Below are positions 5,832 through 48,530 of a stretch of 64,000 bases of DNA, piece by piece. The stretch is taken from contig JAQFVV010000001.1 in the NCBI GenBank assembly GCA_028023455.1, positions 5,146,001 through 5,210,000 on the forward strand, written 5' to 3'. Within the stretch, counting starts at the first letter, position 1. Every line of letters starts with the position of its first letter. The position numbers and the translations under genes were made by a program. The notes beneath the pieces were generated by a model, which worked only from the letters and a program-made list of their open reading frames with translations, was not told where the DNA came from and made no database searches. The stretch comes from Epiperipatus broadwayi (taxonomy: Eukaryota; Animalia; Onychophora).

Positions 5832-5938
5832 CTTTTTTTTTTTCATATGTCATAGCATCGGCCGGGACGCAAACCCACAACCTTCTGCAACCAACTACTT
5901 GCTTGCATGGCGGCTGCGATACCTCTCAGCTTGTCGAA
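5832..5938 (-). mobile_element. Short tRNA-derived SINE (same family), convergent with the 5522 copy
   Basis: TGTCATAGCATCGGCCGGGACGCAAACCCACAACC is nearly identical to 34783-34816 and is preceded by a T-run (the poly-A on -). Confidence 0.75.
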
Positions 5939-6736
5939 GTCAAACAACATTTATTTTATATGCTTTTGATGAAAATCACTGATATATATATACAAAACTG
6001 TGAGTAATATATATATAGTCTCATAGATGTATGAGCATAGTCAGTAAATTTTGTTGTAAATTATAATTTAAAATATCAAAGTTTTTTTTTTAATGTATAA
6101 AAGTGGTGTTTTCCATTTTTTCTGCAATGGATCATTTAGTTTCTGATTGTAAATCAAACAACGATTCCCTTCTCTCTCTCTCTTTTTTTAAAAACTATTA
6201 CCTACGGAAAGAGGAGGTAAATCTGTACTGCTCTATTTGAATGAAAGCAATTTCCAGCTAGTGATTTTTAAAGTTGTCAATACACCCCCCCCCCCCTAAT
6301 TTAAGTACTTGAAATAATTATAGTTCACTGGCAGATATATTTTATTAGATGTCATATTTTACGATAGATGCTACTGTCATTTATATCAAAATAATAATAA
6401 TAAAAATAGATTTCGTTACTGTGAGATTGTTAACATTTGTTTTATTATATGTAATTAATTTTTGTGAGTATTATTAATTTAAATATTATACTTATATGAT
6501 TTAATTAAAGTATTTAATATTAAAAGATGTTTAAGATTTTTTTTCTAAATGTATGTATGTTTATATTCATATACACGCTATCTTTCTCATTTAAGTCTGT
6601 TTTTTGAAACTTTTACTATCTTGCAAAAGCTCACAAAAGATTTTGACAAAATTTGTTACATTTTGTTAATTATTTATAAGTTTAAATATAAGAAAACATT
6701 TTTAATTCAAGAATTGTATATATACCTAAGCTAAAT

Positions 6737-6998
6737 GTAATTAGAGGGAATTTTAACTGAGACTAGCTCTCTTCAGTCATCCACTACATCTTATATAACC
6801 GATACACATAAAGATTTGCTATTTTAATATAAGCTGAGCACTGATTATATGTGTGCGAGATGATGATCTGGACCAACTGATGAATTCTGGTTCAGTGTGA
6901 AATATGGATATTGGAGATGATTTATCTTTTTTACATGTATGTGGTCATGTGTATCCATTGTATAAAATGGAGTGGATGAATGAAGGGCTCTCTAATTA
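6737..6998 (+). mobile_element. Fold-back hammerhead retro-element, family D (decayed HHR at 6873-6914)
   Basis: The left ~75 bp is an inverted copy of the element's 3' end. The interior reads CCAA-CTGATGA-ATTCTG-GTT-CAGTGT-GAAA-TATGGATA-TTGG. It aligns with 29545-29760. Confidence 0.75.
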
Positions 6999-15771: not shown

Positions 15772-16283
15772 TACTTTGCTATTAGAGTTACATAATCAAC
15801 TGAGTGTTTTTTTTTTTTTTTTGCATAATTTAGATACATAATAGTAAATCAATGTTTCAAATTATAACCTACCATAGTTTTATTATGTTACAATAAAATT
15901 CAAACTTTATTTGTCTCATTGATACTGATAGTGCATATAATGGTGAGTAAGTAGCGCATCACAGTTCTTAATGTAAAATATAAATGTGTATGAAATAGAA
16001 AACAACAATATGTCTCTATAGATGATTTGAACATTTATTTATTGAAAATGATTAGCTAATCTAAAAGTAAAAATAAGATTCATACTTTGATGATAAATAG
16101 AGCAAAAGTATATCTATTTATCTGTGTTAATATTAACCTGCAATGTCTAGAAGATGGTGTAGTAATATTCAGACTATAAGGCTTACTTCATACTACTTCA
16201 AAAAGATTAGTTATTTTATATAAATATAATTTTAAATTTGAATATTTTTTTTATTATAAGCATTATTTACAATATGCATTAAA

Positions 16284-17397
16284 CCAATGCACATGTGCTT
16301 TAAAGATAAATTATAAATGAATACTCTTACTTTTTTTCCATACACAAGATATAGTAATTTAGAAAGAATGGAATGAATCCACCCATTCTTTCAACCCAAA
16401 CATTTATGTATGGGCAAATCTTAAGCATATGGAACTGAGAGTGTGAAAATGTTAAGCAATTACTTTAAATTACATTCGTTATATTTGAACGAATGACGCC
16501 TGCAAAATCTTTACAATTTATGACCCATCATTCTTTAATTGAAATTAAACATATATAATGAGATATTATTTTATATAGTACTATGTTTTAATACTGTAAT
16601 AATGATATTAGCGATTAAGCCAATGCACATGCGCTTTAAAGATAAATTATAAATGAGTACTCTCACTTTTTTCCATACACAAGATATAATATTTTAGAAA
16701 GAATGGAGTGAATCCACCCATCCTATCACTATTACAGTATAAATTGTAAAGATTTTGCAGGCATCATTCGTTCAAACATAACAAATGTAATTTAAAGTGA
16801 TTGCCTAACACATTCACGCTCTCATTTCCATACGCTTAAGATTTGTCCATACATAAATGTTTGGGTTGAAAGAATGGGTGGATTCATTCCATTCTTTCTA
16901 AAATAGTATGTTTTGTGTATGGAAAAAAAGTGAGAGTATTCATTTATAATTTATCTTTAAAGCACATGTGCATTGGCTTAATCGCTAATATCACTATTAC
17001 AGTAATAAAACATAGTGCATGTGCATTGGGTTAATAGTGCTATATAAAATAATATCTCATTTTATATGTTTAATTTCAACTAAAGAATGACAGGTCGTAA
17101 ATTGTAAAGATTTCGCAGGCGTCATTCGTTCAAACATAACAAATGTAATTTAAAGTGATTGCTTAACACCTTCACACTCTCATTTCCATACGCTTAAGAT
17201 TTGTCCATACATAAATGTTTGGGTTGAAAGAATGGGTGGATTCATTCCATTCTTTCTAAAATACTATATTTTGTGTATGGAAAAAAGTGAGAGTATTCAT
17301 TTATAATTTATCTTTAAAGCACATATGCATTGGCTTAATTGCTAATGTCACTATTACAGTATTAAAACATAGCGCTATATAAAATAATATCTCATTT
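16284..17397. mobile_element. Inverted concatemer of a ~336-bp monomer (family C) with a 13-bp TSD
   Basis: About 1.3 monomers in one orientation (16284-16721; period 336) and about 1.9 monomers inverted (16740-17397). Exact direct repeat AATATGCATTAAA at 16271-16283 and 17398-17410. Confidence 0.85.
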
Positions 17398-18479
17398 AAT
17401 ATGCATTAAAATGTTTGTATAAAAAAAACAAAATGTATAACCATAATATTGCAAAAAGGAATAAATAAAATTTTTGTTGAACCATAATATCGCAAAAAGA
17501 AAGAAAATTATTTTTGTTTAACTAGATTCATTTGACTTATAATGATATAAATTTGATTTTTATTATTGTTGCCATTAACTATAATAACTTTTATAATATT
17601 ATTCTTAGAAAGTAGTAGAAAAAAATTATCATTTGAAAAAGATGAAAAAGACAGCAATTTAGACTGCAAACAGTATAAGGTAACACTCTACCTAAAAAAG
17701 GAGGCTTAAAATTTAAACTATGTGAGCTAAATTCAAACTAATATTGATTTTTGAAAAATAGAAACCTACTTAGGAAGATATTGAGAAGGATTCCTGTTCA
17801 TTAAAAAAATAATAATGTGAAATTAAGGCATTTAAATATTGATAGTATAATATACCATATGTACCTGCTAAGGGTTAATGGGATTAAGTTGCAAAACAAA
17901 CTAGGTATTGTTCATAACTTTTGCACCTTAAATTCAAAATACTATATTATCATTATTTGATAGCCGGAAACATAAGAATTCATTTTTATAAAATCATAAT
18001 GAGTCATTGCTATCAATATTCGGAATATCCAACTTTGATTTAAAAAAAGTTGTTAAATGGTTGATGTGATTGCATGTAAAACATAATATTATATAATATC
18101 ACACAACACACACACACACATATGCAAGTTTACCCGAGTTTATATCATTAGACTGAATAAATTAATAAAAAATGGCCCTAGGTAGATGAAATTTAAGACT
18201 TCTTCATATCGGATCATTTAGCTAAAAACTGATCCAGATGTACATGGCATTTATTAATTATTTATACAATATTTATATGTAAATGCTTATAGAGTTAAAG
18301 CAGATATATATAGAGAAAGGGAGAATCTACTATAATAAATTAAAAAATTATAATTGTGTGAACTCACAACTAGTAATTTTTTTTTCATTTATTGATCATG
18401 TTCTTCATCTTGAATTGAAATGTGTAGTCTTTGTTTTTCTCTCAACAGATTTTCTTAAGGAGAATATATATTTTTATTA

Positions 18480-26160: not shown

Positions 26161-26359
26161 CCAAATGTAGATAATTCAGGGGTTTTTCCCCAACAAGTTC
26201 CCACTGTGATAAAAAGTAGAGAATTTTTATATGGATTTGCAAAATGATAAACAGAGCAAAACTCTCCATACAGTATTGCCACCTGTGCTAAACAGACTAA
26301 TCAATGATTGCCAGAAGGCCTGTGCATAAAATCCCTATCTAATGCCTACTCATCCAATA

Positions 26360-26401
26360 TCCCCAGACTAGTTTCTGGCTTGTGGCCTTCGTCAGTGAGG
26401 A
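26360..26401 (-). ncRNA. Type I hammerhead ribozyme motif (inverted-arm copy, family B)
   Basis: Reverse complement is TCCTCA-CTGACGA-AGGCCACAAGCCA-GAAA-CTAGT-C-TGGGGA, identical to the + copy. Confidence 0.7.
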
Positions 26402-26551
26402 GCCATATGACTATATAAGCTATTGAGTTTAGATTGAAAATATTTTTTGTGTTTTCAATTTCATTCTCAGGGTTTTGTAGTTAAGTAGAGATAAAAGGTG
26501 GTTGCTAGAGGGTTTGCATTAGATCCTAAGATCTAGATGCAGTGCTCTCAG

Positions 26552-26610
26552 ATCCAAAGCTCCTCACTGACGAAGGCCACAAGCCAGAAACTAGTCTGGG
26601 GATATTGGAT
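26552..26610 (+). ncRNA. Type I hammerhead ribozyme motif (family B)
   Basis: Helix I TCCTCA/TGGGGA, extended by ATCCAA/TTGGAT across an internal loop. Core CTGACGA; helix II GGC/GCC flanked by A's; GAAA; palindromic helix III ACTAGT; GUC cleavage triplet ending at 26596. Confidence 0.75.
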
Positions 26611-27129
26611 GAGTAGGCATTAGATAGGGATTTTATGCACAGGCCTTCTGGCATCCATTGATTACTCTGTTTAGCACAGGTGGCAATACTGTATGGAAAG
26701 TTTTGCTCTGTTTATCAACAATTAATGTGCTAGTATAGGAAATGTGATCATGTGATTTGCAAAATGTTTAATATATTACTGAGGATGAAGAAAAAAAAAA
26801 TTATCCAGCATAACTGATCTGGATAGTACACTAGATTAAAAACATTTATTTGGACATCTAGATACTATTGGAATATAAAATATGCTGAATGAAAAATAAA
26901 GTTTTGGGGGCATAGATGAAATGGATCTCATGCATTCTGAAGTAAAATTTACTGAAAAATATTAGTTCAGGAAAACATTCTATTTACTATTCACTCCATA
27001 TCAAAGAATTGTTTTGTGGCTTCTATTATGGGTGGAATATTTCAAGGATTATTCTGTGAATGACTCATTGATATAATTTTAATTTTGTGAATGTTTGTTT
27101 AATTGAATAACTATACAACATATTTTCAA

Positions 27130-29231: not shown

Positions 29232-29761
29232 GATTTGAACACAAACTTTCAAGCTCCCTTCAGCTATCCACTTTATCTTATATAACTGATACACATGACC
29301 ACATACATGTGGAAAAGATAAATGATCTTCAATATATGTATTTCATGCTAAACCAGCACTCACCATTTGGTCCAGGTCATCATTTCTCCCACACATATAT
29401 AATTAATGCTATGTTTTCAAACTTTAATAGACAGGCTTCAATCTTCTCCACTCTCCAATTCTTCAGCCATCTATATTATTGAAAATTTGATAATGGAAGA
29501 GTTGGAGAGTGGAGAAGATTGAAGCCTGTCCATTAAAATTTTGAAGATTTTCTATCTTAATAAAAACTGAGCACTGATTATATATTTATATGTGTGTGTG
29601 TAGAAATAATGATCTGGACAAACTGATGAGTGCTGGTTCAGCATGAAATACTACACTGGAGATCATTTATATTTTTCACATGAACTTGGTCATATGTATC
29701 AGTTATATAAGATAGCTGAAGGGAATTTGAAAGTCTGTGTTCAAATTCCCTTCTAATTACA
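29232..29761. mobile_element. ~530-bp palindromic family D element with two outward-facing decayed hammerheads (29321-29380 on -, 29608-29667 on +)
   Basis: The arms mirror each other around a ~30-bp loop (~29465-29496). Possible 12-bp TSD TCTAAA(T/G)TTT(G/A)G at 29220-29231 and 29762-29773 (10/12 match). Confidence 0.8.
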
Positions 29762-48083: not shown

Positions 48084-48530
48084 AATTGTTACATTTTCAT
48101 TTACCAATGTCAAACTCCCTCCACTCACAACTTTGACACCATCTGTTTTAGATAAATACACTAATGATTATTACTAATCATTTTTGAAACTAAATATTAT
48201 CTCTAGCACAGATATAAACTTTAAACCTCAGTTAAAGATTAATATATGTTTTTTTAAATTTACACACACGGAGTTATTCACCTTTCTCTGTCCCGTATGT
48301 AATTTCTTTATAGATATAATAAACACCTCCACACTTCCCCATTCTTTTCAAATTCATATAAATAAAGATATAATAAAAGACAAATGACTCCCAAGATGCA
48401 TTTCGTGCTGAACCAGCACTCATCAGTTGGCCCAGGTCACTATCTCTAATATATATCTCTATTATATGCAAAGTATTTATCTAGAGTAAATTGTTACATT
48501 TTCATTTACCATTGTCAAACTCACAACTTT
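48084..48530. repeat. ~42-51-bp direct repeats (48084-48134, 48489-48530) bracketing the hammerhead block
   Basis: AATTGTTACATTTTCATTTACCA(A/T)TGTCAAACTC[cctccactc]ACAACTTT occurs on both sides. Confidence 0.75.
48391..48430 (-). ncRNA. Intact minimal type I hammerhead ribozyme (family D variant), antisense in the KLF intron
   Basis: On -: CCAA-CTGATGA-GTGCTG-GTT-CAGCAC-GAAA-TGCAT-C-TTGG. All core bases are present, with a perfect 6-bp helix II, helix I CCAA/TTGG (plus distal GTGAC/GTCAT) and palindromic helix III ATGCAT. Predicted cut between 48395 and 48394. Confidence 0.85.

Follow-up and report, generated by a model that had tools for sequence, protein, structure and literature searches.

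PLE insertions carry a characteristic set of marks, i.e. heavy 5' truncation, partial tandems (pseudo-LTRs), TSDs of variable length, in many cases a 5'-truncated copy placed in inverted orientation at the 5' end, and a tail of 30–40 bp at one end only (Craig et al., PMC8557442). Hammerheads are absent from entire PLE clades and from the non-autonomous elements derived from these, the Naiad and Chlamys clades lack them yet form the same structures, and non-autonomous Chlamys elements give rise to multicopy head-to-tail insertions (PMC8557442). A PLE protein assayed in vitro cleaved and extended both DNA strands at AT-rich sites (Frangieh et al., PMC11167929). Reverse transcription by PLEs starts at two adjacent internal RNA sites, the tail being the stretch between them, and hammerhead cleavage is dispensable for insertion in vitro (PMC11167929). 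Animal non-LTR retrozymes (PMC7229834; bioRxiv 10.64898/2026.07.22.740005) consist of non-coding tandem units of 170–400 nt with low GC content and TSDs of >4 bp, occur alongside co-resident PLEs, and have the presence of a type I hammerhead in every unit as their defining feature.

The window analysed here is the whole 64,000-nt stretch of contig JAQFVV010000001.1 (positions 5,146,001 to 5,210,000, forward strand) from the onychophoran Epiperipatus broadwayi (GCA_028023455.1), with a GC content of ~26%. Positions 16284–17397 hold an insertion made of a non-coding monomer, termed M (~335 nt), for which a sister family, M2 (~339 nt), was found elsewhere in the genome. Both are likely to be high-copy, non-coding, non-autonomous retroelements that are inserted by a PLE reverse transcriptase and GIY-YIG endonuclease via PLE-type TPRT. 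M represents an atypical case within a known class of elements rather than a novel system. It shows five of six tested features of PLE-type insertion; the sixth, similarity to a partner, gave no match in 26 PLE loci. Like the animal retrozymes, M and M2 have low-GC tandem units of retrozyme size (335–339 nt) with no ORF of ≥40 aa and with TSDs of 9–15 bp, but neither has a hammerhead. Autonomous PLEs, including Naiad (PMC8557442; PMC11167929), share with M the partial tandem, the inverted 5'-truncated copy, the one-sided tail, the variable TSD and the AT-rich targets, whereas M lacks an ORF, is ten times shorter and has no similarity to the sampled PLEs. Non-autonomous Chlamys elements (i.e. 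MRC1 of Chlamydomonas; PMC8557442) are hammerhead-less like M and reliant on a PLE reverse transcriptase and endonuclease, as is proposed for M. They differ in belonging to green algae, in being served by PLEs with an N-terminal endonuclease and in sharing 3' ends with identified partners, whereas M resides in an animal genome in which the endonuclease of the sampled PLEs is C-terminal.

Layout and target site of the insertion in the window

Direct reading and a repeat finder resolved 16284–17397 into M alone, with ~1.3 units in one orientation and ~1.9 units in the opposite one. This agrees with the initial annotation, which had described ~3.2 monomer copies, part of them inverted, within a 13-bp TSD, and mapping to M gave the same result. 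M is numbered from the last complete unit (17063–17397, 335 nt). The two TSD copies (AATATGCATTAAA; repeat D13) form an exact 13-bp direct repeat at 16271–16283 and 17398–17410 and abut the element boundaries exactly, the last 5–6 nt of the left copy being also monomer-like (i.e. microhomology). No ORF of ≥40 aa was present in the element, and its arms and units are 92–96% identical to each other.

The inverted 5' arm (16284–16728, minus strand, ~1.33 units), delimited by BLAST and nhmmer mapping to M and by inverted repeats I1–I6, runs from M272 to M1 (16284–16557) and then from M333 to M163 (16558–16728), with a period of 335–336. Its outer end lies at M272–277, 58–63 nt before the far end (M335) as compared to the ~64 nt reported initially, and falls inside the secondary initiation zone described below. 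The direct arm (16740–17397, plus strand, ~1.9 units), mapped in the same way, comprises M36–M335 followed by M1–M335 and stops at the fixed 3' end of the family. This terminus (...GCTATATAAAATAATATCTCA(TTT), 17374–17397, plus strand), which is common to 30 of 30 loci (M330–335), is read as the primary start site of reverse transcription.

Two anomalies were observed in this copy. The apparent period of the direct arm is 357–358 because of an internal 22-nt insertion (17014–17035, plus strand; repeat D6, alignment A1) that is private to the window copy, duplicates M259–277 and has AGTG microhomology on both sides. The arm junction (16726–16743, plus strand; repeat D8 and the printed sequence) contains an 11-nt filler with overlaps of 3–4 nt on each side and matches M286–303 at 17 of 18 positions. 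Both anomalies map to secondary hot spots, M277 for the 22-nt insertion and M303 for the filler. The filler may be a template-switch scar and the 22-nt insertion a second one, ending at hot spot M277, such that both would reflect re-initiation by the reverse transcriptase at preferred internal sites.

Both flanks (~16133–16283 and 17398–17880) consist of an older repeat with 72–80% identity and >1,300 candidates in the genome. A copy of this repeat on contig C43 (~8534315–8534889) passes through the insertion point without M. A contig assembled from public run X6 joins 16274 to 17405; the 13-mer is present once in this contig, which therefore supports the TSD. This contig was rejected as an empty allele, as three of the 13 duplicated bases differ and its flanks are the older repeat. 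The X6 contig and the C43 copy are paralogous uninterrupted sites, which back insertion and duplication without showing polymorphism; a second-haplotype contig for an allelic empty-site test of the window flanks does not exist. The right flank also contains 2.1 copies of a 41-bp tandem repeat (17439–17522).

Insertion anatomy of M and M2 in the genome

A first search yielded >4,000 M candidates in the 5.6-Gb genome, the best copies being 93–96% identical. M was mapped onto 30 loci with their flanks (L001–L030), which are the top-scoring matches of one query ending at M335, such that insertions with other ends or of less than one unit lie outside the sample. All 30 end at M330–335 (...AATATCTCA, also given as ...GCTATATAAAATAATATCTCA or ...AUAUCUCA) followed by 0–3 T, and none of the 30 carries M sequence past this end. 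Neither a poly(A) nor a microsatellite tail was found on these insertions; the 3' end reads ...ATCTCA(TT) and is followed directly by the TSD, with an overlap of 0–3 nt between the two. The 5' starts are variable, giving total lengths of 330–1145 bp (~1.0–3.4 units), and 29 of the 30 loci hold more than one unit. The tandem junction CTCA-TTATATATG was no more variable than the rest of the unit, indicating that the template was continuous over unit boundaries with no fresh joining per event.

An inverted 5' arm was present in 13 of the 30 loci (~40%). Its outer end fell at M274–303 in 11 of these 13, i.e. ~25–60 nt short of the main end, and three further loci from the genome-search table fit the same zone. 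Arm junctions showed 0–3 nt of microhomology or 1–2 nt of filler. The secondary initiation zone is diffuse (M274–308) with no single sharp site, which counts against a Penelope-type reading, and the resulting offset of ~30–60 nt is more diffuse than the published PLE tail of 30–40 bp. Credible TSDs of 9–15 bp were identified in ~12 of the 30 loci by scoring against decoy sites, for which control scores were ≤9 and below those of the credible TSDs. Clean TSDs accompanied 9–10 of the 13 inverted-arm insertions as compared to 2–3 of the 17 direct-only copies. Their scarcity in the latter also counts against a Penelope-type reading, and the contrast may arise if the 5' junction is resolved differently when one strand alone primes. 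A test for a common 5' region upstream of M in direct-only copies found none.

The sister family M2 was first encountered as a copy adjoining a PLE copy (L049), with 74% identity to M by BLAST. It has >1,400 candidates in the genome and a unit of ~339 nt, and the majority sequences of the two families are 77% identical, with 23% of aligned positions differing. Both readable M2 insertions obey the rule seen for M, in that the primary site terminates one arm while the other stops within the secondary zone. One of them (L057:129–1387) has a period of 339 nt and a TSD of 9–11 bp (TTAAGTGAATC); the other (L049, ~5854–6216) has a TSD of 13 bp (ATATTTATATCAT).

The initial annotation had attributed the window insertion to a single target-primed retrotransposition event on a template of more than one unit. 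This claim held, as the TSD encloses the whole composite, the 3' end is fixed and the 5' ends vary, and it is backed by the same architecture at 13 of 30 M and two of two M2 loci. A genome-wide BLAST and tabulation had been proposed as a check; tabulation of the 30 top-scoring loci returned one fixed 3' end, variable 5' starts, inverted arms in 13 of 30 loci and TSDs of 9–15 bp. Long satellite arrays, or TIR-bounded MITEs without TSDs, had been named as the contrary outcome; all 32 insertions examined are of ≤3.4 units, and credible TSDs flank ~12 of the 30 M loci and both M2 insertions.

RNA structure, ribozyme searches and transcripts

The M monomer has an MFE fold of -72 kcal/mol (z = -3.6). 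This fold contains both of the helices described in the initial annotation, i.e. the long stem 17176–17191/17275–17294 and the 10-bp hairpin 17226–17235/17247–17256. The long stem closes a central three-way domain (17176–17294, plus strand) around two hairpins, one of which is 17226–17256. A stem-loop, GAAUGAC...GUCAUUC (17085–17127, plus strand), is predicted by the folds just downstream of the unit junction. Pairing is retained between M and M2 in the junction region, in this stem-loop (M23–65) and in the central domain, and, with respect to the stem covariation asked for initially, compensatory changes were seen between these two lineages. Four base pairs of the alignment fold are changed on both sides and still paired. 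When the structure was predicted from M only, 17 of 25 changed pairs still paired in M2, and six of the eight pairs changed on both sides stayed paired as compared to 0–3 when the pairing was slid by 1–3 columns. Conservation of pairing across these two lineages moderately favours a selected RNA structure. The stem-loop at 17085–17127 is a candidate part of a recognition element for the reverse transcriptase, and the likely role of all three conserved parts, i.e. the junction, this stem-loop and the three-way domain, is in such recognition and in RNA stability, rather than in self-cleavage.

A hammerhead core (CUGANGA...GAAA) was sought on both strands of 16284–17397 with the pattern CTGANGA...GAAA...TH and gave no match. 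The known self-cleaving classes represented in Rfam include hammerhead, HDV-like, twister, twister-sister, pistol, hatchet, hairpin, VS and hovlinc. A cmscan against all 4,227 Rfam families, for which the tandem copies present every circular permutation of the unit, returned no ribozyme family at the gathering score in the window, at E ≤ 10 in 16000–17700 or at E ≤ 1 in the whole window and the M2 locus L057. Rfam also gave no match to a tRNA, 7SL or 5S head in M. The initial description of the monomer as having no recognisable ribozyme is consequently sustained by both the motif search and the Infernal comparison with Rfam, and the accompanying check for a SINE likewise revealed neither a Pol III head nor an A-rich tail.

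Two candidate ribozymes were considered and rejected. The central domain contains CUUAAGA...GAAA, one base off the hammerhead core. In the conserved fold, however, CUUAAGA and GAAA each take part in base pairing, the second helix has additional bases next to it, GAAA is replaced by GAAU in M2, and the Rfam hammerhead models are silent. The other candidate, an HDV-like motif located downstream of the unit junction, was dismissed as well. HDV-like ribozymes conserve a G at position +1, and here +1 is U in an AT-rich region with no Rfam match.

Hammerheads do occur elsewhere in the window. An insertion at 26247–26753 is flanked by a 13-bp TSD (GATTTGCAAAATG; 26234–26246 and 26754–26766), so that the whole spans 26234–26766, and comprises inverted arms (26247–26403 and 26559–26717) with a 36-nt tail on the right side only; hammerhead motifs lie at 26366–26395 (minus strand) and 26567–26596 (plus strand). 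The layout that M had been said to share with the hammerhead families of the window was confirmed for this one. Its fixed 3' end lies 157 nt downstream of the ribozyme cut, indicating that, in a family that does have a ribozyme, the position of the insertion end is still not determined by ribozyme cleavage. Three further minimal motifs of the type I hammerhead, in which the third helix is very short, were noted at 6877–6910 (plus), 29623–29653 (plus) and 48395–48426 (minus). Rfam under-detects the hammerheads of this genome, since these three motifs are missed at E ≤ 1. A near-perfect hairpin of ~100 nt (29427–29537), situated between inverted copies of the second hammerhead family (motif 29623–29653), matched several microRNA precursor models with E = 7.7e-9, all below their gathering scores. 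Rather than a microRNA gene, this hairpin may represent the point at which the two arms of a further Penelope-type insertion meet.

Evidence at the RNA level was drawn from assembled contigs of public runs. M-family contigs were found in four runs (X5, X6, X7 and X8) from two organisms and cover both arms. Contigs of X8 have adapter-like sequence directly before 16388 and 16393 (plus strand), which we take to be the Illumina small-RNA 5' adapter. If this identity is right, the M family yields small RNAs, including antisense ones, in the related organism. Contigs of four runs end at 17063 (M1), but these ends were not accepted as the 5' terminus of an RNA starting at the unit junction. Assembly-graph contigs break just after a copy-variable position, M335 is A or T within the family, and one such contig continues into the inverted junction of another copy.

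Probable insertion by PLE machinery and alternative origins

Potential donors of the enzymes are abundant, with >10,000 candidates for PF01541 (GIY-YIG) in the genome. PLE ORFs of 800–901 aa (L043–L048) contain YVDD, match solved reverse transcriptases at residues 498–626 and have a C-terminal GIY...YIG. The main PLE family (L043:2301–8618; G000:C12394) has two intact 901-aa ORFs arranged as a tandem of 3135-nt period. The ORFs are preceded by an inverted 5' arm and followed by an optional 50-nt tail; neither the regex nor Rfam detected a hammerhead in this family. Residues K, N and I are extremely frequent in its proteins. The AT-biased PLE ORFs gave no matches in Pfam or NCBIfam, and the assignment as PLEs is based on the whole-genome PF01541 matches, the visible motifs and the matches to solved reverse transcriptases. 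An autonomous PLE sharing the junction or 3' region of M was not present in 26 PLE loci, which sample few PLE families. The partner search combined short-word BLAST with a scan that tolerated mismatches in the junction motif and with covariance model R1 (M300–M70) over 245 kb, and matched M and M2 copies only. The lack of a partner match counts against a Penelope-type reading.

The observed end positions, TSDs and architecture suggest a path for insertion of the window copy. A transcript of more than one unit, holding an internal junction and the downstream stem-loop, would be bound by a PLE protein; the template would be continuous RNA in the form of a tandem transcript or of a circle. Staggered cleavage by the endonuclease, offset by 13 bp, would open an AT-rich site. 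One DNA end would prime cDNA synthesis at the main site, CUCA (M332), and copy 1.9 units, while the other would prime in the secondary zone (M274–308; here M272–277) and copy 1.33 units. Both cDNAs would extend toward the RNA 5' end and be joined in head-to-head orientation, a short filler between them arising from a template switch. The order of priming, the identity of the enzyme and the nature of the template are inferred. One feature fits this path less readily and counts against the favoured explanation. Typical M source copies are of 1.1–1.5 units, yet insertions reach 2–3 units, and these would need either a circle or in-register template switching across the terminal redundancy.

M carries no hammerhead and probably needs none. 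Its fixed end requires no RNA cleavage, because hammerhead-less PLEs exist, insertion proceeds without cleavage in vitro, and the neighbouring hammerhead family shows the 157-nt offset. The initial annotation had taken the missing hammerhead to point to a different ribozyme or to a system not yet described. This step was not upheld, as the architecture is the published signature of PLEs (PMC8557442), and it is further weakened by the hammerhead-less PLE clades (PMC8557442), by the dispensability of cleavage (PMC11167929) and by the 157-nt offset next door.

A retrozyme-like origin would have an undescribed self-cleaving motif, or a host nuclease with a ligase, produce unit-length circles that are then copied by rolling reverse transcription. 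Such circles would explain perfect tandem junctions in insertions of up to 3.4 units as compared to sources of 1.1–1.5 units, and would suit a strongly structured monomer (z = -3.6) whose three-way domain has compensatory changes between M and M2; hammerhead retrozymes of similar size have been reported as circular RNAs in animals (PMC7229834). We nevertheless hold this origin to be rather improbable, given the lack of any known ribozyme at E ≤ 10 or by motif in the searches above, the base-paired state of CUUAAGA...GAAA and its GAAU form in M2, a fixed end in the neighbouring hammerhead family that lies 157 nt off the cut site, the finding that cleavage is unneeded for PLE insertion in vitro (PMC11167929) and the formation of the same structures by hammerhead-less clades (PMC8557442). 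A slightly lower probability is given to M and M2 being 'retrozymes without a hammerhead', for which the three-way domain or the junction would mediate unit-length processing and circularisation, through a new motif or with the assistance of a protein, and the PLE machinery would copy a small non-hammerhead circle. The chance of a new ribozyme or circularisation route is altogether small.

Retrotransposition of the L1 type also gives TSDs of 9–15 bp, 5' truncation and 5' inversions. These traits, and the microhomology of 0–3 nt at the 3' junction and at arm junctions, would be shared by M if it were a SINE-like passenger of a LINE with an AP-type endonuclease and its inverted arms arose by twin priming. 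This too is unlikely, because M insertions have neither a poly(A) or microsatellite tail nor a tRNA, 7SL or 5S head, and because multi-unit tandems are not a trait of LINEs or SINEs. The outer ends of the inverted arms moreover fall together within a single 35-nt zone rather than being spread out, and the one-sided tail is common to the hammerhead family and the true PLEs of this genome. The 5' inversions of L1 twin priming thus resemble M in the inverted 5' segment, the variable TSDs and the junction microhomology, whereas M differs in lacking poly(A), in forming tandem multimers and in placing the second priming within a defined zone. An origin at the DNA level would likewise give inverted arms and tandem units, whether as a piece of satellite, as a DNA transposon of the foldback or MITE type, or through local duplication in inverted orientation. 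This origin is hardly credible for a family in which none of the 32 insertions examined exceeds 3.4 units and their flanks are unrelated, a fixed end is paired with a variable one, the arms differ in length and are circularly permuted, TSD length varies, and an uninterrupted paralogue of the target repeat exists.

In annotation, M-like elements are easily taken for satellites, MITEs or LTRs. M also offers a compact natural template of 335 nt, with mapped primary and secondary starts, for studying internal initiation by PLEs. Animal retrozymes are thought to depend on their hammerhead, whereas two abundant families of this genome share the PLE-type insertion anatomy of the co-resident hammerhead families without a ribozyme. 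M and M2 would thereby provide in-vivo, genome-scale support for the dispensability of hammerhead cleavage (PMC11167929) and for the proposal that hammerheads may be no more than passengers of PLEs (PMC8557442).
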